Source: Cercozoa sp. M6MM (lineage: Eukaryota; Protista; Endomyxa: Ascetosporea). Taken from it: a stretch of DNA of 64,000 nt. The notes under the pieces are model-generated. The model saw nothing but the letters and a program-made list of their open reading frames with translations. It was not told the DNA's origin and did not search any database. The stretch lies in NCBI GenBank assembly GCA_040357565.1, contig JBDODJ010000014.1, one strand, 5' to 3'. This document shows positions 11,619 through 28,955 of this stretch, piece after piece. Both the position numbers and the translations under genes were made by a program. Within the stretch, counting starts at the first letter, position 1. Each line of letters starts with the position of its first letter.

Positions 11619-14600
11619 ATGTCGGGCATTGTGACTTTTGCCACCGATGTCGTTCTCTGGTGCCGCTTTACTCGGCATATATGGATTTTCTTGCGTGTGT
11701 CTTGATGTCGAATACTGTACAGGCCTACTGTGATGGGTGCGGCCATCGCGCGGCCTTCTCTTTCTTCAGTGGGTTGTCCATACCCCCCCCCCAGCCTCTT
11801 ATGTATGTGTGGTATAGGCGCTGTACATGGCCATAACGGTGCTGTACTTTGCGTTCGGACGGCAACGAGGCGAGCCGAACTTTGTGGTGGTAGTGTCACC
11901 CTTTCTATGTCTCTGTATGGTGCATGTGTCATGTGTCGGTGCCTGCAGTACAAGCGACGAGCCACGGAACCGGTGCCGACCTGGACTTGGGCACTCCTGT
12001 TGCTGGTCGCTTTGGGCACCTGCACGGCCCATGCCGTTCTGCAGACGCTCTACGCACTCGACGAAATGGGTAGACTCCTATCCCCCGTTATCACTCCCTG
12101 CATTGCCCTATTACCCTCGCTGCAGACGGTCCCAAGTCGAAAGATGACGTCCTATGGCAGCTTGGATACCTCCGCGTGGACGAGAGCAACTGGGCGGTAC
12201 TACCTTCTCTGTGCAGTACCTGTGGAGACACGTGTCTGTGTGGCTGGTGAACAAGCTTGTTTGGGCAGAGAGTGCTCGTGCCGGACGTGGCCGTGGCCGT
12301 GGCGACGCTGCTGTTTTTCGCGCTGCAGCGCCGCTTCGTGCCGCGGCAGTACGACCGACTGTCTGGCGTGGACCAGCAGCCGCTCATGGGTACATGTGCC
12401 GTCTCTCTCTCAGTGTGCACGTGCCAGTGGGACACGTGCCAGTGGGACACGTGCTCATGTGGTACCTTGTAACTGAGGCAGGCAACGTGGCCGACCTCAA
12501 GCCGTGGCAAACCGATCTGTCGCGCTGGCGTCCGTCGCCATCCTTTTTGATCTCGGTACACATGACCACAGGTTTCAGAGTGATCGATCAGTCAATCGAC
12601 CGGTTAGTCAGTGATCGATCAAAGTGACCACACTCTAAACTGGACAGGTGATGGCGCTGTTCTTTGCGGCTGCCGTGCTGTCGCCGCACGTGCTGTCGCT
12701 GCCCTTCTTTGCCGTCGTGTGGCCGCTGCTGATCCTGCGTAAGTTGCCACGTGTGTGCTGGGTGGCTGACTGACCACGTGGGTGGCTGACCACCTAGGTA
12801 CCTGAGTGACTGACCACGTGCGCAGGCGCCGCGTGGCCCGACCTGCTGACGCGCGTGTCGACGCGCCGCGCGCAGTTCGCATTCGCCGGTGCTTTCGCCG
12901 TCTTCATCGTCGCGCACATGTATCCTCTGCCACGTGCTCACTCATTGATCATAGACTGGTCACTGAGTGGTCACTGCGATCATGAGTGACCACTCTGCTC
13001 TGTGTATGTTGTTGGTGTTGGTGTTGGCAGAGTCTTCTGGATGCTGACGCAGTTTCCCTTCTTCAACCAGGGCGTAGGCTTTGCCCCCTCCCCATTTACC
13101 CTCTCCCCCGTTACCTTGTTGCCCCCCGTTGACTCCCGTTACCCCCTTTGACCTGGGCAGTTGTCGGGCCGGCAGGTGCGACTGCTGGGCGTGGTGATGC
13201 TCTTCGACGACGACGCCGATCGCAACGGCGTAACCGTCACTCTCATTGCGACAGAACTCACTCCCTTAACCGCCACTCAGTTCGGTGAGACCACGTGTCT
13301 CTGTGTGTGCAGGAACCGTCGCGCACGGTGCCACTGGTGGCGCAGATCTGCGTCGAGGTTCTGCTGCTCGCCGTGCTGCTGCAGTGGCGGTATCTACCCC
13401 CTCGCACGTGCCAACTAAGAGTGTGTGACATGTGCCCACTGAGAACACGTGGCAAGTGGGACACGTGCCAAGTGGGACACGGGCTAAGTGGGACACGTGC
13501 CAACTGAGAATGTACATGCGGATGTGCATGGTATAGGTATCACATGCGACCGCCGCGTCGCCGTCTGTTCGGACAGGTGTGCGACGAGGACGTGCCGACC
13601 GATATTGTACTGTCCCGCTTAATTAAGTCTGCGTGGTCTCCCCTTTAACTAAGTCCAATGTGGACGGTACAGGTGGACCGCGAGGAGACGCTGCAGTCGC
13701 AGGTGCGCACTTTCGTCAAGAACACGCTCATCGAGCCTGGTAGGAGTTTTACCCCCCCCCACACACACACACACACACACACTTCTGTAATACCCCCCTC
13801 TTACCCCCTCTTACCCCCTCAGTAACATCGCTGGTGCGTGAGTACGGGTTTCGTGCCATCCAAGTCGCGCTGTTCGTGGTAACGTTTACCCCCCCCCAAC
13901 TCCCATCTTACCCGTCTTACCCCCACCCATCTTACCCTCTGACCCCCCATACAGGTGTGCTTCGCGACTGACAGCGGACTCAGTCTCGGTCTCGTGCTGC
14001 TCTTGGTACTGTGAAACTTCATTTTACCCCTTTTACCCCCCTTTTACCCCTTTTACCCGCCTACTCTCGTGTTTGTGTTGGGCAGTTCGTGTCGATGTAC
14101 CTGACGCAGAAGCAGTTCCGAAAGATCGTGCCGTTGCTGGTGCGTACACAATGTGTTTAAGGGGGTGCAACGAGGGTGGCTACAGGACATGGGTAGTTAA
14201 GGGAGCTGTCAGTAGTTAAGGGGGTTGTGTTTGTAGTTCATGTACGGTGCCGCCGTGGCTCTGGCGACGTTTCTGTTCGAGATGCCCGAGGTACTGTGAC
14301 ACAGACACGTGTGACCACCCACTGCTGAGGGACCACGTGACCACTGTGACCACTGTGAGTGACCACTGTGAGTGACCACGTGCTTGTGTGTACACAGGTG
14401 ATCATTGGCGAGGCCGACAAGGACACGAAAAAGTACGAACTGCTCGAGAAACTCGGTCTGGAGCAGCGGTAGCGTTTATACCCCCCTGTTTACCCCCCCC
14501 CCCCNNNNNNNNNNNNNNNNNNNNNNNNNNNNNNNNNNNNNNNNNNNNNNNNNNNNNNNNNNNNNNNNNNNNNNNNNNNNNNNNNNNNNNNNNNNNNNNN

Positions 14601-17600
14601 NNNNCTGTTTACTCCCTGTTTACCCTATTTTTACCCCTGTCGACCTCTTTTCCTTCCCTGTCCCCCGTTTACCCCCTTTACCCCAGACCGCTGGCGTTCC
14701 TGCACGAGTGCGTGGTGTGGCTGCCGCTGCTGATCGTGGCGCTACACCTGTCGCTGGAACGACTGCTCCGCTGGTACAATGGTCGATCACTGTGTGGTCA
14801 CTCTGACTGACTGACCCACTGAGCTGAATGATCGGTCACACGCGCGCCCGTGTGCAGGGGCGAGAGTGCCTCGGAACTCCACTTGCTCAACGAGGCTGCT
14901 CTGACGGTACTGGACGTGTTTTACCCGCTGTTTACCCCCCTGTTTACCCCCCCCCCAACAGTTGGCGCTGCTGGACGGCGACTCGCACCGCGTGGCCGTG
15001 TTTCTGCAGCGGCGCGCCGACCTGGTGAGTGCGCTGCGAGTAACGCCGTCGGGCGACACGGCACTCCACCTGGCTCTGCGACGACGTCGACGTGCCTGCG
15101 TGGACCTGCTGGTTAAGGCTGCGGAACAGTCGCCGGACATGCGACTGCTAGACCCGCGTGCCGTCAATAGCGACGGTGACACGGCCATGACACTGGCTCT
15201 GCGACTCGGCTTCCACGCCGTCGCACGCCGACTCTACCGCCTCGATCGACTGCACTACCAACGCACACCGCACGCCTGTCTCCTCTGGCAGGTACCACCA
15301 GTACCACTTTACTCGTCCGCGCGGATTAGTCACCTGTGTGTAGCCGCATGAAGTCGCCATGAAACGCGTCGACACTCTCAAAAAGTGCGGCGTCGCTTTG
15401 CAGGAGGTACACACGCCCAAAGCTGTTTCGAAAGGCATTTCTTCGCTTTGCTTTGAGCGGATTTCAAAATTCGTGCTTTGCTTTGAAGGAAATTTCGAAA
15501 TTCCTGCTTTGCTTGATTGCTTGGAGCATAATGTCGTAAATACCTTGGACAGGACCGCGTGGTGCTCGCAGTCGGCGACGCGGCGCGTCAGTTCGCACTC
15601 GACGTGCGAAAGCAGGTGCTTTCTTGTTTCTTGATTTTTAATTTTTTGGCAGTTTGGTATTTGTAGCGTCTCCGCGCGGACGACTTCTTCGTCAACACGG
15701 GCGCCGTGGACGACGAGTTTGACCTGGATTTGGACGATGTGGGCTCTGCTTACCTATTTACTCTTTTTAAGCCCCCATTGGACTGTCGTTTTGCCCACCA
15801 TTTTACCTGCTCCCTACCCTCCTGTGCCCCTTTCCTTTCCCTTACCCTTACCCTGACTTCATCCCCGCAGGGCGCATGCGTGGACATGCTGGCGGCCGGC
15901 GAGTTTTCGGAAACGCGCGGCCACACGTGGTCCGAGTCGGTGCGACACGCGGTACGCGGCGCCGTAGCGGTGGCCAAAACAGTGGTACGATCACTTGTTA
16001 AGGGGGCGTTTGTGTTAAGGCGGTATTGTTAAACGGACGCTTGATTAAGGAGGTGTCGGTTTGATTAAGGCTGCGTTATGTGTGTGTCTGAACAGGCATG
16101 GAACCACGCGCAGAAACTTGTGTTGCTGCTGCTGTTTTTTGCTGCCATGGATCGACGTGATGCCATGCATGTAGCCTCCTTTTACCCCCCCTGTTTACCC
16201 TCCTGTTTATCGTCCTGTTTACCTCTCTGTTCGCCTTCCTGTTTACTCCCCCTACCCTCCTATTTACCCCCTCCCCAGGTGGGCTACTTTGCGAGTTTCC
16301 TGCTCTTCTTTCTGATCGGTCGGCACGTGACTCTGACGCGTCGACTGTGGCCGTGTCTGCTGCTGTACTGCCAGCTAGGTACTCGGACAAGAACAAGGTT
16401 GTTGGCATGTGTGCACAAACAAGGTTGTTGGTGGGGCAGTGTGTGGCACCATGTACCTGTGGTTCGTGTGGGACCCCAACGGTCAGCGCACCGACCTGCC
16501 GCAGCGACCGCCTTCGTGGCAGCGACGTCTCGGCGTCGACTTTGGCCGCATGACGCTCGCGCAGTTCGCCGGTAGGCTTTACCCCCACCTCCCCCTTAAC
16601 CCACCCTCTCCCTTAACCCTACCCTCCCCCTTAACCCCTCGCCCCCCTTAACCCCTCGCCCCCTTAAACCCCTGGCATACAGGCCTGTCGCTGGCGGTGC
16701 TGTGCGCCGTGTTCGCGCAGATGCTGGTGTTCCGCAGTCGGCACCAGGCGGCGCTGCAGCAGCGGCTACAGCAGTCGCACCCGGTGTACGTCCAGTTGTA
16801 CGGCGTCCATTCGTACCGTCCACTCTGCCCTGCCTGTGTCCATTTGTACAGCTGTAGCCCCCCAATTCTTTACCTTTTTTACCCCCCCCCCCCGCCCGGA
16901 TAGAGACGTGCACGTATCGCTTGAGGCACTGGCTTGGCGCAAGGACCGCGCCGCTTCGGTACTGACTCTCAGTGTGTCCAGATGGACCGACTGATTGTAG
17001 CCATGTTGTACATGTGTGTGTGTGGTACAAATGGACAGGAGCGTGGTCGCAAGTTGGCCAGTGTTTTCTGGAGCTCGGTGGCCGTGCTGGCAGCGGTACT
17101 CGTTGTCTCTTCTATATTGATCGACCATGATTGATCGTATAGTCACTGATCGATCATATGGCCACTGGTCGATCGTATGGTCACTATGATCGATCATAAT
17201 TTTGATTCTGTTTAGGCTCCGAGACACGGGCTGTCGCTGCTGCTGGCCTACGCGGCGCTGTCGCTCGGCGCGACCGTTGGCGGCGTCGCCTCGCTGCTCT
17301 CGCTCGGCTACCTCGTCGTCTTCGCGGCCGCGCTGGCGTAGCCTCCTCTTCACCCCCTCTTTACCCCTCTTTGCCCCCCCCTCTTTACCCCCTCTTTACC
17401 TCCCCTTTTTACCCTCTATACCCCTCTTACCTTCCCCCTTGAGGCAGTATGCACCGTCACCGGCACGAGCGAGTGCTGCGCTTTGCGTGGCTGCTCTTCG
17501 TGTGCTACGCACTGGGTACAATCTTGCTGCCTTAAGTAACTAATTAAGGGAGTGTGTGTAGCCGTTCTGCTGCTGCGATATGCGGCGCAACACGACGCGG

Positions 17601-20600: not shown

Positions 20601-22381
20601 ACCGTGTTCCAGTTGCCGTGGATTCCGACGCCCGACCTCGTGGACCCTGTACTCGCACACTGTTGGGGATGTAAATAAGGGGTAAAGAGGGAAGTAAAGG
20701 TATGTTGTGTCGTGTGTGCAGGACCAGGAACTGTTCCGTGGCGCCGCTTGGAGTCGGTAAGTGCAGAGCTTACTGCCCTAGTTATTCTTACCCCCCCCCC
20801 CCCTACACCATCGGTGCAGAGTGATCGGACTGAACAAGTTCTTTGTGCGTTCGCTCCCACGTGACGAGCAGACACTGCGTGTCGACCCGTTTGGTACCAC
20901 CCTGGCATGTGTCCCTGGCACCAGTGCAGAGTGGTCCTTTCCCTCTGAGAGAAACGAGCTGACTGGTGACTCACTGGGGCAGGACCACGTGGCGTGTTGC
21001 ACACGCTCGTCATCTTCGTCGTGGTCGATCTGCAGCTGCGACTGCTGCAGTCGACGTGAGTTTTTACCCCCCTCTTGACCCCCTTGACCCCCTCCCTTTG
21101 ACCCCCTCCTATCCCTCTTACTCCGACAGGAGTGCCCGACGTGCCATCCAGCAGGAGAGAGATGACATGCGGTATCGTACCCTCCCTTAACCCCCCTATC
21201 AAATGTGTGTTTGTGTGTGTGTGTGTAGCAATAGTCCCGTACGCGCGGTCATGTCGACTTTGCTGGCCAATGTACCTTGCTTCTTTTACCCCCCTGCCCC
21301 TTTGCCCTTTCCCCTTTCCTCTTTGCCGTCTACCCCGTTACTTTACCCCTTTACCCCTTACCCCGTTATTCCTTCACCCTTTATCCCTTGCCCCTTTACC
21401 TCTCTACAGCACGAGCGACGTCGACGACAGGCGGCTCAAATCTCGGCGAAACGTCGCATTTTGGCCGTATCTCTTCTGTTTTGTATTTGCTGTGTGTGTG
21501 TGTGTTTTTTTGTTTGTTTATTTTCTGTTGTTGTTGTTTTGTGTCCTTGTATTAGTTGTGTTTTTTTTTGTGTCCTTGTTTTTGTATTTTGTTGTTGTTT
21601 GTTGTTTTCTCTTCTCACCTGACCCTGCTGTAGGAACTGCGCGCACTGCTGCACACGGGCGACGGTAGTTTTCTCGTTCCCACTGGGGCACCGGTCGTGT
21701 CACCAAGCACGTGCTGACTGAGCGTGCTGACTGAGTGACTGAGCACTTGCTGGCTGAGCACATGCACTGTGTGTAACACGTGCGCAGGCGACAAGCAGGT
21801 GGTCGAGTCACTCGGCATTGCTAAACTCAAGTTCAACGACCGCGAGCTATGGCCGGTGCTGCTCTTTCCTACTGTTATTCTTGAGTCTGACTTAGAGGGC
21901 AGATCCGCGAGGAGTACGTCCGCGCGGACGAAAACGCACGGCACAAGCGAAACGCAAGCGCTGTCATTTTGCAAAGCGAGGACGACATCGCGCGTGTCGA
22001 GACGGCCGAACTCAGCGTTGGCGCTTCCAACGGCGCTGCGAGTGGTTAACCCCCCCCCCCCCTACCTTCCTCTGACCTTCCTTTGACCTTCCTCTTACCC
22101 TTACCCTCGCTTACCTCCAGAGGAGTACGAACATTGGTCGGACAAGGCGGCGCATGTCGACGTCGACGCCGACGGTCGCATTGTCGCCTGCAACGACAAG
22201 TTCGCCAGTAAGCTTATCTATCTGTCTTTATCTTATCTCTGTGTATAGTTAGTATACTACCGAACACATGGATGTCTGTGTGCTTTTTAGAGATGGTGGG
22301 AGTCACTGGCGAAGCGGTAGCATATGCTCTGCACCGTCTGTATGTGTCTGTGTGTCTGTGTGTCTGTGTGTGTGTGTGTGT

Positions 22382-22429
<48 letters not shown>

Positions 22430-24809
22430 CTGTGTGTCTGTGTGTCTGTGTTTGTGCGTGTCTGTTTGTGCGTGTGTGTGTGTGTGTGTGTATGTGCGTG
22501 TGCGTGTGTGTGTGTGTGACGAGGGGTACTGATACAGGAGGGCGGCGGTGCACGCAAGGTGCTGCTACGCAACATGCCGTTGACGGAGTTGCTGCCGCTG
22601 TTCAACGATGCGTCTGGCCCGTACCTTTTTACGCAAGGACAGGAAACTCTGGACTGACATGTCAGTTAACTGACATGTGTACGGCATTAACCACAGGTGC
22701 GAGCTCTCGAAATCCTCGGGCAGCAGCGTCAAGGTCTTCCTGCAGCTGCGGTCGCTCCAGACATCTCTCCAGGCACCTCTGCGCCGCGTCTACGTGCTGC
22801 CGCAGCGGTCACTGTTGCATCGAGTCGCAAGGTCCGCGCGGAGGTGGCTACACGCGCGACTAGTCGACTCGGTCGACTCATCACTCTTTGTGCGCACGGT
22901 AGCTCTGTTGCTGCGTGATCTTTTGGGACAAAAGATTGATGGGTTACCTATATGTGTGTTGCAGGACAATGCGGAGCTGCAGGAGATGGTTGATCTGGCT
23001 CGCTTCGCTGGTAGTCGTCTTTCCTGTCCTCGTGTGCTTGTGTGTGGTGTCGAAGCAAGGCTGGTTGGTTCAACACTCAGAGATGGCACCGATGGAACGC
23101 GATGACGAAGCTTTCGCAGCCGAGAGCATTGCTGTGCCTCTTTTGTTTCTCTATGCTGTGCTGTGTAACAAGCGGTGTGTGTGCGATGACAGGTGAGCGC
23201 CCGTCGCAACGTGCTGAGTAGTCTCACCGTCCGCGTATTGCCTCTGTGTGAATGCCAGTGTAGGGAGGGGGATGTGCACCTGTGTGTCGCAGTCCATCTG
23301 GCAGTGGCTCACTCTGTTCGGCCGAGTGCTGCGGTCGCACACGGCCACACTGTATCCATCGCTGTCTTGCATCCCCTGCTCCCAGTATGTTGGATGTGTG
23401 TGGTAGTGTGACAGTGTTCCTGTGTATGGACGTCTTGACACACCCTTCGCTTCTGTAAGAACACATCATTTTGATACCGAGAGATACGATTGGTTGCATG
23501 TGCTGCCGACTCAGTACGCTGCTACCGCTCGTTCTGATTGCGTGTGCTGTCGTCCTGCCGTGTGGCAAGGGTGCTTCCTGCATTCCTGTCGCCTTTTTGC
23601 TTCCTGCTGTGTTTAGTTTGTTCGTTTGTGTACTTGCTGTGTAGGAGTCTGGCGATCGCTGCAGCTCCTGCTGATTTTCGTGGTGCTCGTGTCGTTCCTC
23701 GTGCAGCTTACCGTTGTGTGTGAGGTGTGCCGTTTTTCCCCTGGTCCTTTCACACTAAGCTTCGCACAAAAACACCTTTTCCAGACCTCTGGCGAATCGC
23801 TCGCGCTCACGCCCCTTGCGTCGTGTCTGCCGGCCTTCAATCTCGAGGAGGTACTCTCCCTCTCGAAACACAAACTGGTGTGCTTTAGATCTCAAGTTGG
23901 CTGTCAGGCGAAGGAAATGTTTGGACTCGAGGGTGAAAAGCGCCAGCCACTCGCTTTTGTGCGACAGGTAGCTTTTGCTCAGCCTTGTTTGCTCTTTGAA
24001 ATGTGTGCATTCCTTTCAGGTTTCGTGGAACAACCGACTTGGCATTTCAAAGGCTCCGCGCGGACAGGCCTTTTGGTTTTATTGCTCTGTTTCTTCAGTT
24101 TTGTGTTCTCTCTTGAACAACCGTATGATGACAGGTATTTCTGCGCATGGAAGCTTCTAGCGCTACTGGCGCTGTCCTGGCACCAGCAGGTTTGATTTTT
24201 CTATAATGGTGCCAGTTTGGGCTTTTGTGGTACTGACTTGGGTTTGTTCGCACAGTCGCTGAAGCGCAAGGGCAAATGGGACGCCGAATCTCTCGTTCGT
24301 TTTAGCTTGTTTTGGTCGTTTAAAGTAGTTTTTTGTGCGATTTTTGGCTTTGCTGGCAGCATGACGACTACGCCACAGTGCACTTCTGGTACAGTTTGCT
24401 GCATGTGCGTTTTTCTTTTCTACTGACTGTGCTATACGTTTTTGCTTGCAGGCACAGCACGAAGGAGAAGGAAAGCGAGCGGCGACGCCGAAACGCGGCG
24501 GAACGACTGCAGTTGCGAGAGGTGCTTCTTTCATCTTGTTTCGTCATGTTTTTTGACAGTATTTGGTGTTGTGTCAGAACTTTTTGGCGGCCACGCAGCG
24601 CCGACAGCGTCAACAGGATGCTCGTGTACCCTTCCTATTCTTGAGGACATAGTTGTCCAAACGGACCGTGTATGGACCTGGACCCTTAAATGAACCGTCG
24701 CATTTCGGCAGATGACGGATGCCGAGCGTGCCGAGGCCTTGGCCTTGCTTCGGGCCGATGATGCCGATCTGCGCAAGTACACTTGACTCTGTGTCCTGTG
24801 TGTACTGTC

Positions 24810-24858
<49 letters not shown>

Positions 24859-24868
24859 NNNNNNNNNN

Positions 24869-24929
<61 letters not shown>

Positions 24930-25261
24930 GTATATGTGTGTATTCTCAGAGAGTCGAAACGCAGCTTGTGGCGACGCCTGTTTCCAAGACAGCTGCGCGA
25001 GAACTTCTTCGCTATTGTTGCTTGCTTTTACCCCTCTTTTGTACCATCTTACTCCCCCGTGTCTGTGCAGTCACCGACCGACTTTGACGGCCGCGTGTTG
25101 TTCGACGTCAAGCCCGGTCGTGATTGGTGCGCTTCCGCGCGGATACAGTCTTGTGTGTGTGTGTGTGTGTGTCTGTGTCTGTGTCTGTGTCTGTGTCTGT
25201 GTCTGTGTCTGTGTNNNNNNNNNNTGTGTCTGTGTCTGTGTCTGTGTCTGTGTCTGTGTCT

Positions 25262-25474: not shown

Positions 25475-28400
25475 GTAGCTTCGGCTACGCCGCTATGACG
25501 GCACCTGCGACGAACTGTACCTTCCTTACCCCCTTGCCTCTTTAGCCCTTACCCCTTACCCCTGTACCCTCCTGATCGCAGCGAGCACGACCGATGCTCT
25601 AGCGCAGAGTCGTTTTTCGGTACCCCCCTCCCCGTACGTATGAGGTGTGAAACGTGTGCACATGGACAGGGTGGCATGGTTCTGTTCCTGTTCCTGCACA
25701 TTGCCGTCATGGTGTGCGAGCGGTACCTTTTACCTCCCCCTGCCCCGACCCCTGCCCCTCTCCTTACTTCTCTTTCCCCTTACCCCGTACCCCGTACCCC
25801 GTAGATGGATCTTCCTGCGCAAGTCGCTGGTGGGCAAGACGCTACTGACGGTCTTGACTTTCGTGCTGTTCGCCTCGCTGAGTGTGCTGTCCTGGCCGGC
25901 GTAGGCTCTTCTATCTGTGTGTCCGCGCGGACGGGAACAGATACAATATTATCTGTGCAGTCGCTCGCGTCGACCGCTCTCGCAGAACGGAACCGCGCAG
26001 TTCTTCTTCTTCCTCAAGTTGCTCTACTGGTGGGTTTGCCCCCTCGTTACCCTCCCTTTTACCCCCCCCCCCCCCCTCAACCCACGCAGGACGGTGTCGC
26101 TGTGGCAGCTGCGTGACGGTTACGTTCTGTTCGATCCGCATCGGTAGTTCCCTTTACACCTTCAGTGGGCACGTGTGTGACCGAGTGTATCTGGGCAGCG
26201 ATCGTATCACGCGCGGCTTTTCGACGGTGCGCAATGTGGTGTTCATCGCGTACCGCGCGCTGCCCTTCGTGTTCGAGTTGCGCACTCTGCTGGTACACTT
26301 GGACTGCCTAGTTTCTAGGTGGCAGTAGGTAGTAAAGGCAGGTACTGAGGGGCAGGTGCTGAGAGTATGTCTGTGGTGTGACTGGACAGGACTGGGTGGC
26401 GATGGACACGACACTGGACCTGTGGGAGACCTTCAAGTTAGAGGACGTCTTCGCGTCGATCTACTCGTACACTCACTGACCACGTGGCCAACCAAGTGAG
26501 TGACCACCTGGGCAGGGTCAAGTGCGGTCTGCAGGGTCAAAATCCCGTCGACGACGAGCTGCCGCGCAAGCGGTACAGTTCCTTTGCCCCATTTACCTCC
26601 CTGACCCCATACCCCCCCCCCCCGGACAGAGGCCAGATCCAGACGCAGGTGACCAAGTACACCAACGGCGTGCTCGTGTTCGCCGCACTCATGACGCTGC
26701 TGCTTGGTAGACACGCACTACTGACCACTGGCCACGTGACCACCCACTCCATGTGACAATCGATGTGACCACTCGGTGTGCAGGCCCGCTACTGCTGTTC
26801 AGCACGGCGAACCCTGCGCAGCACGTGAACCCAGTACCCTCCTTTTATCTCATTACCCTCCTTTTACCCCTTACCCTCCTTTTACCCCTTACCCTCCTTT
26901 TACCCCTTCCCCTCCTTTTACCCCCCCCCCCCCTCCGACAGGTGCGAAGCGCGCGCCTGCAGGTTGACATCATCGATCTCAAGCAGTCCTCGCAGGTCGA
27001 GTTGCTGCGCATCTCGTCTGGTACAAACCAGCCTGTCTCCCTCTGTCCATATGGACGGAGTCTGTCCTGGCCCGTGTGTCCATTTGAACCGTTGCTGGTG
27101 TGTAGCCACTCTGATTCGCGAAGCCACGACGGCCGAGAGTTCGCTGCTAGGACGCTATGTACCTTCTTCCTATCTCACTTGACACGTGTCTTTTGTGTGT
27201 GTGACCGCTGGAGTGACCACTTTTGGCACGTGTGTGACCACTGGAGTGACCACTTGGCACGTGAGCAGCACTCGCTGAGTGGTGACAAGCCGGCCTCGAT
27301 TCAGCGCACGCAGCTCGTGCAGTCTGACGAGTCGCTTTGGACGGTGCCTTTTACCCCCCCCCCCCCCGTCCTCTTTACCCACCCCCCTCCATGTGACAGG
27401 TGGCACCGCCAGCACGTGCCGCACTGCTAAACGGTCTTCGAGGCGACGCTGGCGTAGGCTTGCCCCCCCCCCCCATCTTTGCCCTATTGTGTATACTCGC
27501 AGAACGGCATCGATGAGAGCAAGCCGCGACTGCGCTGGACGGTATTTTTCTACTCTTTTCGAGAAAGTAAGAGGGGTAAAATGGGGGGGGGGGGGAGATA
27601 TACATGCAACACAGCTGGCCTTCACGCGCGAGGAACCGGTCGGTTTCGAGACGGTGGACACGCAGGTCGAAATGACGCAGCCTCTGAGTGCCGCGCAGCG
27701 ACTTGCACTGGCCGACGTTATCGATCAGGCGCAGACACATGTACCCTCCCTCAGTCAGACAGTCAGTGACCACGTGTATCTCAGTTGGCACGTGTGCAAT
27801 CACTGTGTTTGTGTGAGTGACTGCAGGTGCAGGACACGCTGCTGCCTCTGCGCGACGGCAGCGACTGCGACGAGCGGACCGCCTTGCCGCCTGCTGGTAC
27901 CTTTGGTCACAGTGGGCACGTGCCAACTGACCCCCAGTTAGCACGTGCCAATGCCCTCACTGATACATACACTCGCAGGCTCGACGTCGGAGAGTGCGTG
28001 GCCGCTGTGGTTCCGACTGCCGGCACATGGCGAACCGTCGCTGCTGACTGCCGGTACACATTTGCACTTGGGTGAACACGTGTCTGTTGGTACCAAGAGA
28101 GACACGTGCGCGCAGGCACTCCGGTGCGGTGCCTACGACTGCGTCTGCAGACTGATGCTGTCGTACCCTCTTGTTCTTACAGGGGTTAAGATGGGGTAAT
28201 CAGATGGGGTCACTGTGGTCAGTCGCGTGGTGAGTATTGGACACTTGCGGATGCGTCGACCAGTACAGGCGTTAGTTTCCTGACGGTACCAGTGTGATCA
28301 ATAACTCTGACTGGGTGACCATCCCAAGTGAACACCTTCTGTAGGTGTCGAACGAGGTGCTGTCGTCGTCGCTGTTCGGACTGGCCAACCTCGACGTGAT

Positions 28401-28955
28401 CACGCTGTACGTCACCGTTGTTCTCACCGTTGGCCGCTTCCTGCGACAGATGGTGCGTTCACCCTACCTCTTACCCCCTCCCATCCCTTACCACTCTTGG
28501 TGTAGGTGGCGGAGAAGCTGCACCAGATCGTATACGAGGACGTCATGAATGCCGACTTTATCTTCCGTCTGTGCATGGGTTCCTTACATACATAGATATG
28601 ATATATTATATATATATATGTATATGTGTTAACTCTATGTGCACGGGCAGGCATCTACCTGGCACGCGCTCAACGCGAGTTCCTGCAAGAAGAGCACCAT
28701 TTCCGCATTCTGATTCGCATCTACCGCGACCCGACTCTGCTGCTGCTGCTCACGCGGCGTCGCGACGGCGCAGGTGCCTTACCCTCTTGATATCTCATAT
28801 CTAAACATCCAATGTATCTATATATATTTATATTAGCAGAAGAAGACACGCGCTTCGACGACGCCGACAGCGCCTCGTCGACGGCTGTGCTGTCGACGAG
28901 TGCTGCCGCCTCGGCCCAACAGCATGACGAGGACTCCAAGAGCGACGACGAATGA
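11619..28955 (+). CDS. PIEZO: Piezo-type mechanosensitive ion channel (~100 introns) with inserted ankyrin repeats and PAS domain
   Basis: Repeated 4-TM units, the PFEW signature YRALPFVFELRTLL|DWVAMDTTLDLWETFKLED (~26250-26450), outer helix GPLLLFS, inner helix VITLYVTVVLTVGRFLR and CTD GIYLARAQREFLQEE..LIRIYRDP. Stop TGA at 28953-28955. Confidence 0.95.
14505..14604. other. Assembly gap (100 N) after a C tract inside a Piezo intron
   Basis: Run of N. Confidence 1.
14858..15291 (+). other. Ankyrin-repeat segment (2 clear plus 1 degenerate repeat) within Piezo
   Basis: AALT|LALLDGDSHRVAVFLQRRAD, SGDTALHLALRRRRRACVDLLVKA, VNSDGDTAMTLALRLGFHAVARRL; spliced in frame to flanking TM exons. Confidence 0.85.
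17965..18100 (+). repeat. Exonic Ser/Asp repeat (SDGTTDP / SDGA units) built from AGTGAC motifs
   Basis: Repeats of CCCAGTGACGGTACGACTGAT and GCCAGTGAC in the open Piezo frame. Confidence 0.8.
22121..22800 (+). other. PAS domain within Piezo (four exons)
   Basis: Spliced peptide KAAHVDVDADGRIVACNDKFAKMVGV..VLLRNMPLTELLP..CELSKSSGSSVKVFLQLRSL..RRVYVL follows the PAS pattern (D-x-D-G-R-I-x-x-x-N-x-x-F-x-x-M/L-x-G ... L-T-E-L-L-P ... K-x-G-x-x-x-x-V). Confidence 0.75.
22340..22517. repeat. (GT)n-rich intronic microsatellite
   Basis: Directly visible. Confidence 0.95.
24812..25473. repeat. Cluster of intronic (GT)n and (GTCTGT)n microsatellites with two 10-N gaps
   Basis: Tracts at ~24812-24925, ~25153-25293 and ~25407-25473. 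Confidence 0.95.

Follow-up and report, generated by a model that had tools for sequence, protein, structure and literature searches.

The window analyzed here, a 64,000-nucleotide stretch of contig JBDODJ010000014.1 (assembly GCA_040357565.1) from Cercozoa sp. M6MM, contains a gene for a Piezo mechanosensitive channel, the product of which (P0001, 2792 amino acids) carries, in the cytosolic loop that leads from the beam region to the penultimate four-transmembrane unit (THU8), a short module that is likely of PAS origin. The exons encoding this module are real Piezo exons, and it is probable, on our reading, that the module itself, ∼90–100 amino acids long, is a strongly diverged and shortened descendant of a PAS domain, with a role in contact or coupling that is probably not that of a sensor. 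A PAS origin is likely because the N-terminal part of the module is specifically PAS-like, and because P0004, a relative of P0001 in the same Piezo clade, has above-threshold PAS matches in the same loop. Sequence comparison places PAS-type sequence in the post-beam loop of a Piezo clade, which bears on a family of channels usually regarded as pure force sensors.

Results

P0001 is a true Piezo channel, as an earlier reading made from the nucleotide sequence alone (the sequence-only reading) had proposed. Pfam returns Piezo_THU9_anchor (PF24874) at 203.9 bits, Piezo_cap (PF12166) at 143.6 bits and PF23188 at 27.9 bits, and the domain map runs from Ank_2 at residues 498–585 through THU_Piezo1 (THU8) at 1906–2060 and THU9_anchor at 2174–2416 to the cap at 2468–2749. 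On the window DNA itself, the anchor matches fall at 26200–26292 and 26390–26479 and the cap matches at 28336–28458 and 28626–28757. The anchor motif PF(X2)E(X6)W is present as P-F-V-F-E-L-R-T-L-L-D-W at 26263–26398, spanning one intron, and Piezo1 and Piezo2 chains in the PDB match residues 2146–2752 with expect values (E) of 1e-52 to 1e-48. With animal Piezo1 and Piezo2 (e.g. PDB 5Z10, 6B3R, and 6KG7), P0001 shares a homologous C-terminal region of 600 amino acids (E ∼1e-52) together with THU8, the THU9-anchor, the cap, the inner helix, the C-terminal domain, and the PF..E......W motif, as well as a long charged helix after TM28. It differs from the animal proteins in having a PAS-like module in the beam–THU8 loop and ankyrin repeats in the distal blade, neither of which is found in the 10 insect Piezos that were scanned, and in the division of its gene into 107 exons.

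The location of the module between a beam-like helix and the penultimate four-transmembrane unit, also claimed by the sequence-only reading, is borne out by Pfam and by an alignment of 16 Piezos. Residue 1575 of P0001, where TM28 ends, is paired with residue 1272 of a Spodoptera Piezo, a position within the Piezo_TM25-28 match of that protein (1112–1392), and the THU8 of the insect protein begins opposite residue 1906. The module (1712–1813) is thus placed downstream of the beam region and upstream of THU8. The beam region also matches residues 1299–1409 of P0004 (BLASTP E 6e-6), the first 60 residues without a gap. The loop between beam and THU8 is hypervariable: in the 16 Piezos its length ranges from 211 to 889 residues.

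Three PAS-clan models, PAS_8, PAS_9, and PAS_4, match the same 23–26 N-terminal residues of the module, all in register, with E from 0.08 to 0.19. PAS_8 scores 13.4 bits (E 0.078) on residues 1726–1751 against a cut-off of 21.8, PAS_9 scores 13.2 bits on residues 1726–1749 (profile positions 7–30) against a cut-off of 27, and PAS_4 scores 12.4 bits against a cut-off of 23.1. These matches are limited to strands A and B and helix C, where the N-terminal S1-box signature (D.dG.I...N..F...G) lies in register with profile positions 7–38 of the three models. When residues 1712–1820 were compared by hhalign with an alignment of three good PAS domains, namely the two from P0004 (PAS-A and PAS-B) and one encoded on contig C275 of the same genome, a score of 22.4 was obtained over 27 columns in the correct register. 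This score was reached by none of 100 shuffles (mean 10.6, standard deviation 1.8), and other 109-residue windows of P0001 scored at most 16.4.

Several results weigh against the presence of a PAS domain. No PAS profile attains its gathering score when the whole of P0001 is scanned with Pfam, an NCBIfam scan of P0001 gives no PAS match, and exon-by-exon Pfam and PDB phmmer searches give none either, single exons being too short. Among 5.8 billion proteins no homologue of the module was found, the query (P0001 residues 1705–1860) recovering P0001 alone, and the hhalign alignment does not extend beyond its 27 columns. Smith-Waterman comparison of the module with PAS-A and PAS-B of P0004 and with the C275 PAS domain is at shuffle level (z ∼0.1), though in the expected register. 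An AlphaFold2 model of exon 4 alone (67 amino acids, no alignment), with a predicted local distance difference test score (pLDDT) of 61, has two helices, one of which, of low confidence, covers putative strands G and H in a fragment that lacks the partner strands; the model weakens the claim of an intact PAS sheet and does not decide it. A complex prediction for the module (1712–1850) with the beam (1570–1664) returned a score of 0.00, which is no evidence either way. In Pfam profiles and hhalign alike, nothing aligns past residue 1751, and the C-terminal half (S2 box and strands G-H-I) is without PAS signal; a word-based search with the open reading frame (ORF) at 22674–23102 gave no match. 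The PAS domain that the sequence-only reading had announced is partly supported, by the N-terminal 23–26 residues and by the presence of PAS in P0004, but not by any profile at threshold or in the C-terminal half.

Judged by eye, the stretch of the module that begins with strand A and ends with the last strand is ∼91 residues long, against ∼100–110 for a PAS fold with its five-stranded antiparallel sheet and flanking helices, and its central region, rich in Pro and Gly, is short, which agrees with the shortened central helix that had been noted from the sequence. The helix beginning ARRWL and the D-S-S-L-F motif that follow it (1826–1841) belong to the Piezo loop and not to PAS, because similar elements are found in P0002, a Piezo that lacks PAS, and in P0004 downstream of PAS-B. 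The ARRWL helix is modeled in the exon-4 fragment with a pLDDT of ∼77. From the last putative strand (∼1805–1813) to the D[SH]SLF motif there are 24 residues in P0001, and the corresponding distance from PAS-B of P0004 is 26 residues. Read directly, residues 1724–1813 contain neither a Cys motif of the LOV type (NCRFL) nor a His in the short central region, and no flavin-binding signature was recognized by eye in the module, no defined motif for flavin adenine dinucleotide (FAD)-PAS domains being applied.

Three other assignments in this region were considered and rejected. A remnant of a first PAS domain at residues 1685–1706, in the linker exon, gave an hhalign score of 8.5 that was matched by 71 of 100 shuffles. 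The sequence SLFVRT (1839–1844) was discarded as strand I, the motif lying outside PAS in P0004 and a loosely similar stretch occurring in P0002. A CRAL_TRIO lead from Atlas for exon 4 alone, at 0.87 with recognition below the mark, was treated as noise.

The distribution of PAS among Piezos was assessed in a set of 16, consisting of P0001 and 15 proteins with precomputed domains that were retrieved with the conserved C-terminal 607 residues as query. P0004 is a JGI/IMG environmental protein of 2407 amino acids from a 13-kb contig, automatically named "PAS domain S-box-containing protein," and its PAS matches at 1582–1652 are above cut-off (PF00989 43.3 bits, E 4e-11; PAS_4 30.6 bits; PAS_9 30.0 bits). 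Its THU8 starts at 1789, 137–207 residues downstream of the PAS matches. By eye, P0004 contains two tandem PAS domains, PAS-A at ∼1410–1575 and PAS-B at 1582–1727, with an acidic insertion in each. In P0001 the Ank_2 match, at 33.8 bits, is above cut-off and corresponds to window positions 14858–15291, in the distal blade, and the ankyrin repeats of P0004 (429–503) align with it. PAS-clan and ankyrin matches (E ≤ 1) are confined to these same two proteins, and the other 14 of the 16, which include 10 insect Piezos, two from Diphylleia, one from a green alga, and also P0002, P0008, and P0019, have no PAS or ankyrin match at E ≤ 1. Ankyrin and PAS thus travel together in this set, since both are found only in P0001 and P0004.

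A maximum likelihood tree of the C-terminal part groups P0001 and P0004 with P0002 (support 89/96), the branching inside the group not being separated. The beam–THU8 loop is 248 residues in P0002, where it is acidic and of low complexity and has no PAS, 331 residues in P0001, and 478 residues in P0004, lengths consistent with the insertion of no, one, and two domains, respectively. P0001 and P0004, whose C-terminal identity is ∼30%, are alike in belonging to one Piezo clade, in having ankyrin repeats at an aligned blade position and PAS in the beam–THU8 loop, and in their loop motifs KF.D.ELWP and D[SH]SLF, whereas P0004 has above-threshold PAS and two domains by eye where P0001 has one shortened, sub-threshold module.

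Within the loop, KF.D.ELWP (window 21835–21855) is common to P0001 and P0004, and of the motif pair ARRWL... followed by D[SH]SLF (window 22842–22890), the ARRWL part occurs in P0002 and the DxSLF part in P0004; these motifs are conserved amid the otherwise hypervariable loop of the clade. In P0004, PAS-A has a low-complexity insertion of ∼40 residues past helix D, and PAS-B has a 34-residue acidic insertion between strands G and H (1667–1700). The long central helix of PAS-B (region 1630–1650) contains a His-His pair at a possible heme ligand position, heme-PAS proteins holding their ligand residue in the central helix, and it might be speculated that this domain binds a cofactor.

Gene model and genomic context

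The gene is represented by the public model MHM6MM_001113, whose product is listed at NCBI as "MAG: hypothetical protein MHM6MM_001113 [Cercozoa sp. M6MM]" and is the single match to the 36-residue inner-helix exon in a HMMER search of 1.84 billion representatives. Joining the 107 exons of the window gives a translation identical to P0001, and GT-AG was resolved by script at 103 of the 106 junctions. The median exon is 68 nucleotides and the median intron 76 nucleotides; between 21000 and 24000 in the window, the exons are short and rich in GC at third codon positions (GC3), and the introns are short and pyrimidine-rich or GT-repeat-rich. The four PAS-like exons (Table 1), the last of which occupies 22697–22898 in full, have AG acceptors and GT donors, keep the frame, and together encode residues 1712–1844.

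Table 1. Exons and regions of the Piezo gene discussed in the text, in window coordinates
Feature	Position	Strand	Basis
Whole Piezo gene, 107 exons, 2792 amino acids	11619–28955	+	Public model MHM6MM_001113 (P0001)
End of TM28 and beam-like charged helix, five exons, residues ∼1560–1642	20983–21664	+	Alignment with insect Piezo_TM25-28
Exon with loop motif KF.D.ELWP (residues 1656–1664)	21788–21855	+	Motif common to P0001 and P0004
Linker exon ahead of the PAS-like module, residues ∼1665–1711	21903–22044	+	Exon map
PAS-like exon 1: N-cap, strands A and B, start of helix C, residues 1712–1741	22121–22207	+	PAS_8, PAS_9, and PAS_4 alignments from 1726
26-nucleotide micro-exon, residues 1741–1749, continuing the PAS S1-box motif	22291–22316	+	Required by frame; PAS alignments run through to 1748–1751
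PAS-like exon 3: Gly-rich loop, short central helices, residues 1750–1777	22538–22620	+	GC3; part of P0001
Exon 4, first part: putative strands G, H, and I, residues 1778–1813	22697–22805	+	Hydrophobic pattern, by eye only
Exon 4, remainder: conserved Piezo loop helix (ARRWL...) and D-S-S-L-F motif, outside the PAS module	22806–22898	+	Motif comparison with P0002 and P0004
Helix into THU8 (GRVLRSHT, residue 1901)	23293–23351	+	Aligns with GRYIFSHT of P0004 and ..SHT/AHT of insects

In-frame GC3 is 0.82, 0.81, and 0.81 for exons 1, 3, and 4, compared with 0.36–0.67 in the other frames (0.48 and 0.67 for exon 3), and is 0.62 for the eight codons of the micro-exon. This micro-exon is the shortest of the 107 exons, and the intron directly after it, at 221 nucleotides (mostly a GT-type simple repeat), is longer than any other in the gene. 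Since PAS-like exon 1 has an end phase of 1 and exon 3 a start phase of 0, the two cannot be spliced directly, and an intervening exon is required, with a length that leaves remainder 2 on division by 3; between the two exons there is essentially one usable acceptor, at 22289–22290. The PAS profile alignments cross both junctions of the micro-exon, an outcome that a gene predictor would not yield by design. The splicing of the PAS-like exons is supported by the public funannotate model together with these profile alignments. The annotation was produced with funannotate (train, predict, and update) in a pipeline that drew on transcriptome reads (PMC11069148).

The sequence-only reading had described four in-frame, canonically spliced exons, and GT-AG borders, GC3 frames, and exact agreement with P0001 all support that description. 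The peptide it gave is identical to residues 1724–1798 of P0001, although it ended exon 4 near 22800, where the exon in fact continues to 22898 with the donor GTAGCT, and it skipped an exon in the beam. That exon, at 21229–21271, adds 14 residues in the middle of the beam-like helix in the public model, and it is supported because the gapless stretch to P0004, the first 60 aligned residues, runs through it. Runs of N, marking assembly gaps, are found at 14505–14604, 24859–24868, and 25215–25224, inside Piezo introns and beside simple repeats, and the public gene model bridges them.

Strain M6MM is a marine amoeba from fish gills and a member of Apofilosa (Rhizaria), with a draft genome of 23.67 Mb, a GC content of 52.8%, and a mean of 10 introns per mRNA (PMC11069148). 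Under its present name, Lemnamoeba sinaloensis, it has a chromosome-level assembly and an unusual reported load of simple-sequence repeats (PMC13746701). The Piezo gene described here is the only one detected in the M6MM assembly, apart from weak matches elsewhere. These resemble Piezo_TM1-24 or the anchor (E 0.003–0.4), lie at C53:63520–63891 (+), C449:1384–1638 (−), and C365:12104–12343 (+), and may be noise or may belong to a second, very divergent Piezo-like gene.

Bona fide PAS genes occur elsewhere in the genome, at C275:6076–6381 (−) and C1616:2399–2548 (+), with PF00989 scores of 43 and 30 bits, and the C275 match spans almost the whole profile (positions 10–109 of 113). The two appear to be paralogous to each other, with a similar upstream helical-repeat ORF in each. 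They have an N-terminal S1-box pattern in common with the Piezo module but are not detectably nearer to it than is any other PAS, and for lack of such closer similarity neither is an obvious donor. Genome searches with exons 1 and 4 of the module found no paralogue of either.

Discussion

The corresponding loop of animal Piezo1 includes three elements that link the blade and beam with the pore (latch, lateral-plug segment, and clasp), and to our knowledge no signaling domain has been recognized in the cytosolic beam-latch-clasp loop of animal Piezo structures. The module of P0001 would be the positional counterpart of PAS-B, the PAS domain nearest to THU8 in P0004, and in its entirety it may still fold as a PAS domain. 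Most likely it would act as a protein-contact or conformational-coupling unit that hangs on the beam-latch-clasp region, and through such contacts it could tune gating or localization in a manner akin to the eag-PAS domain of KCNH channels. The eag-PAS domain of the EAG and hERG channels is cytosolic and usually free of cofactor, and it tunes gating by intramolecular contacts. The analogy is that of an ion channel with a cytosolic PAS module; the channel folds are unrelated, and PAS is N-terminal in KCNH but embedded between transmembrane units in P0001.

The explanation nearest to a diverged but folded PAS descendant, and one that we hold to be possible if somewhat doubtful, is that the ancestor of the clade had a loop PAS of which only the S1 box survives in Lemnamoeba, the rest having become a non-folding loop or helical spacer. 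Such a relic would account for the restriction of PAS profile matches to residues 1726–1751, for a module ∼15–20 residues under typical PAS length with a central region rich in Pro and Gly, for the helices without strands that AlphaFold2 gives exon 4 alone, and for the contrast of two domains in P0004 with one in P0001. It sits less easily with the strong codon bias and open frame held across four exons, with a hydrophobic alternation compatible with three strands, and with the retained spacing to the conserved downstream motif, and the exon-4 model on which it draws is of low confidence and lacks partner strands. A chance resemblance, in which a lineage-specific loop segment unrelated to the PAS of P0004 happens to contain a short S1-box-like motif, is quite improbable, although every PAS score in P0001 is below threshold, the pairwise similarity to P0004 is not significant, and the loop is hypervariable among Piezos. 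Three PAS-clan models fall on the same residues in register, the hhalign score is unmatched by any shuffle or other P0001 window, and a real PAS occupies this site in the ankyrin-bearing P0004 while the 14 other Piezos have no PAS match at E ≤ 1. Least probable of all, and hardly to be expected, is a gene-model artefact in which the micro-exon or its neighbors are mispredicted and the true transcript skips them or reads otherwise: the 26-nucleotide exon is indeed the shortest of its gene and precedes a simple-repeat-rich intron that is the longest, but exons 1 and 3, in the frames indicated by GC3, can be connected only through an exon of remainder 2, the interval has one sensible acceptor, the PAS profile matches extend across the micro-exon, and the public model comes from a pipeline that used transcriptome reads.

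It is also conceivable, though unlikely, that the module is a true sensor, along the lines of the tuning by ligand or redox suggested by the sequence-only reading, binding a ligand or cofactor or sensing redox or light and allosterically gating the pore of a polymodal Piezo. The conservation of PAS in the same loop of two distant Piezos is consistent with sensing, as is the fact that the loop bears the beam, latch, and clasp that couple the blades to the pore in animal Piezo1, and the His-His pair in the central helix of PAS-B in P0004 might be taken, speculatively, in the same sense. For P0001 itself, a protein-contact or structural role is favored over ligand sensing, because the module lacks both a LOV-type Cys motif and a His in its short central helix; it shows no flavin signature by eye, and many PAS domains bind nothing. 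A broader proposal, which we regard as rather unlikely, is that these protist Piezos, which combine blade ankyrin repeats with a loop containing one or two PAS domains, are polymodal as a group and link a chemical, redox, or partner-protein signal to force transmission, their mechanosensitivity being gated by a PAS sensor.

The sequence-only reading knew of no described example of such a channel, and a full-text literature search indeed found no paper on a PAS domain in a Piezo; Piezo goes unmentioned in the paper on the chromosome-level genome of Lemnamoeba sinaloensis (PMC13746701). The combination had nevertheless already entered the databases as P0004, and since one automatically annotated protein has both, the Piezo and PAS architecture is rare and not unique. 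The question can be tested in Lemnamoeba sinaloensis, which is culturable and has a chromosome-level genome (PMC13746701). If the interpretation of the module as a PAS descendant is correct, this would be the first natural Piezo with classical signal-input and cytoskeleton- or partner-binding modules, in the form of a loop PAS and blade ankyrin repeats. The loops of P0001 and P0004 would then amount to a natural experiment on how the post-beam loop controls gating, and the pairing of Piezo with PAS may offer a scaffold for the engineering of ligand-tunable Piezos.

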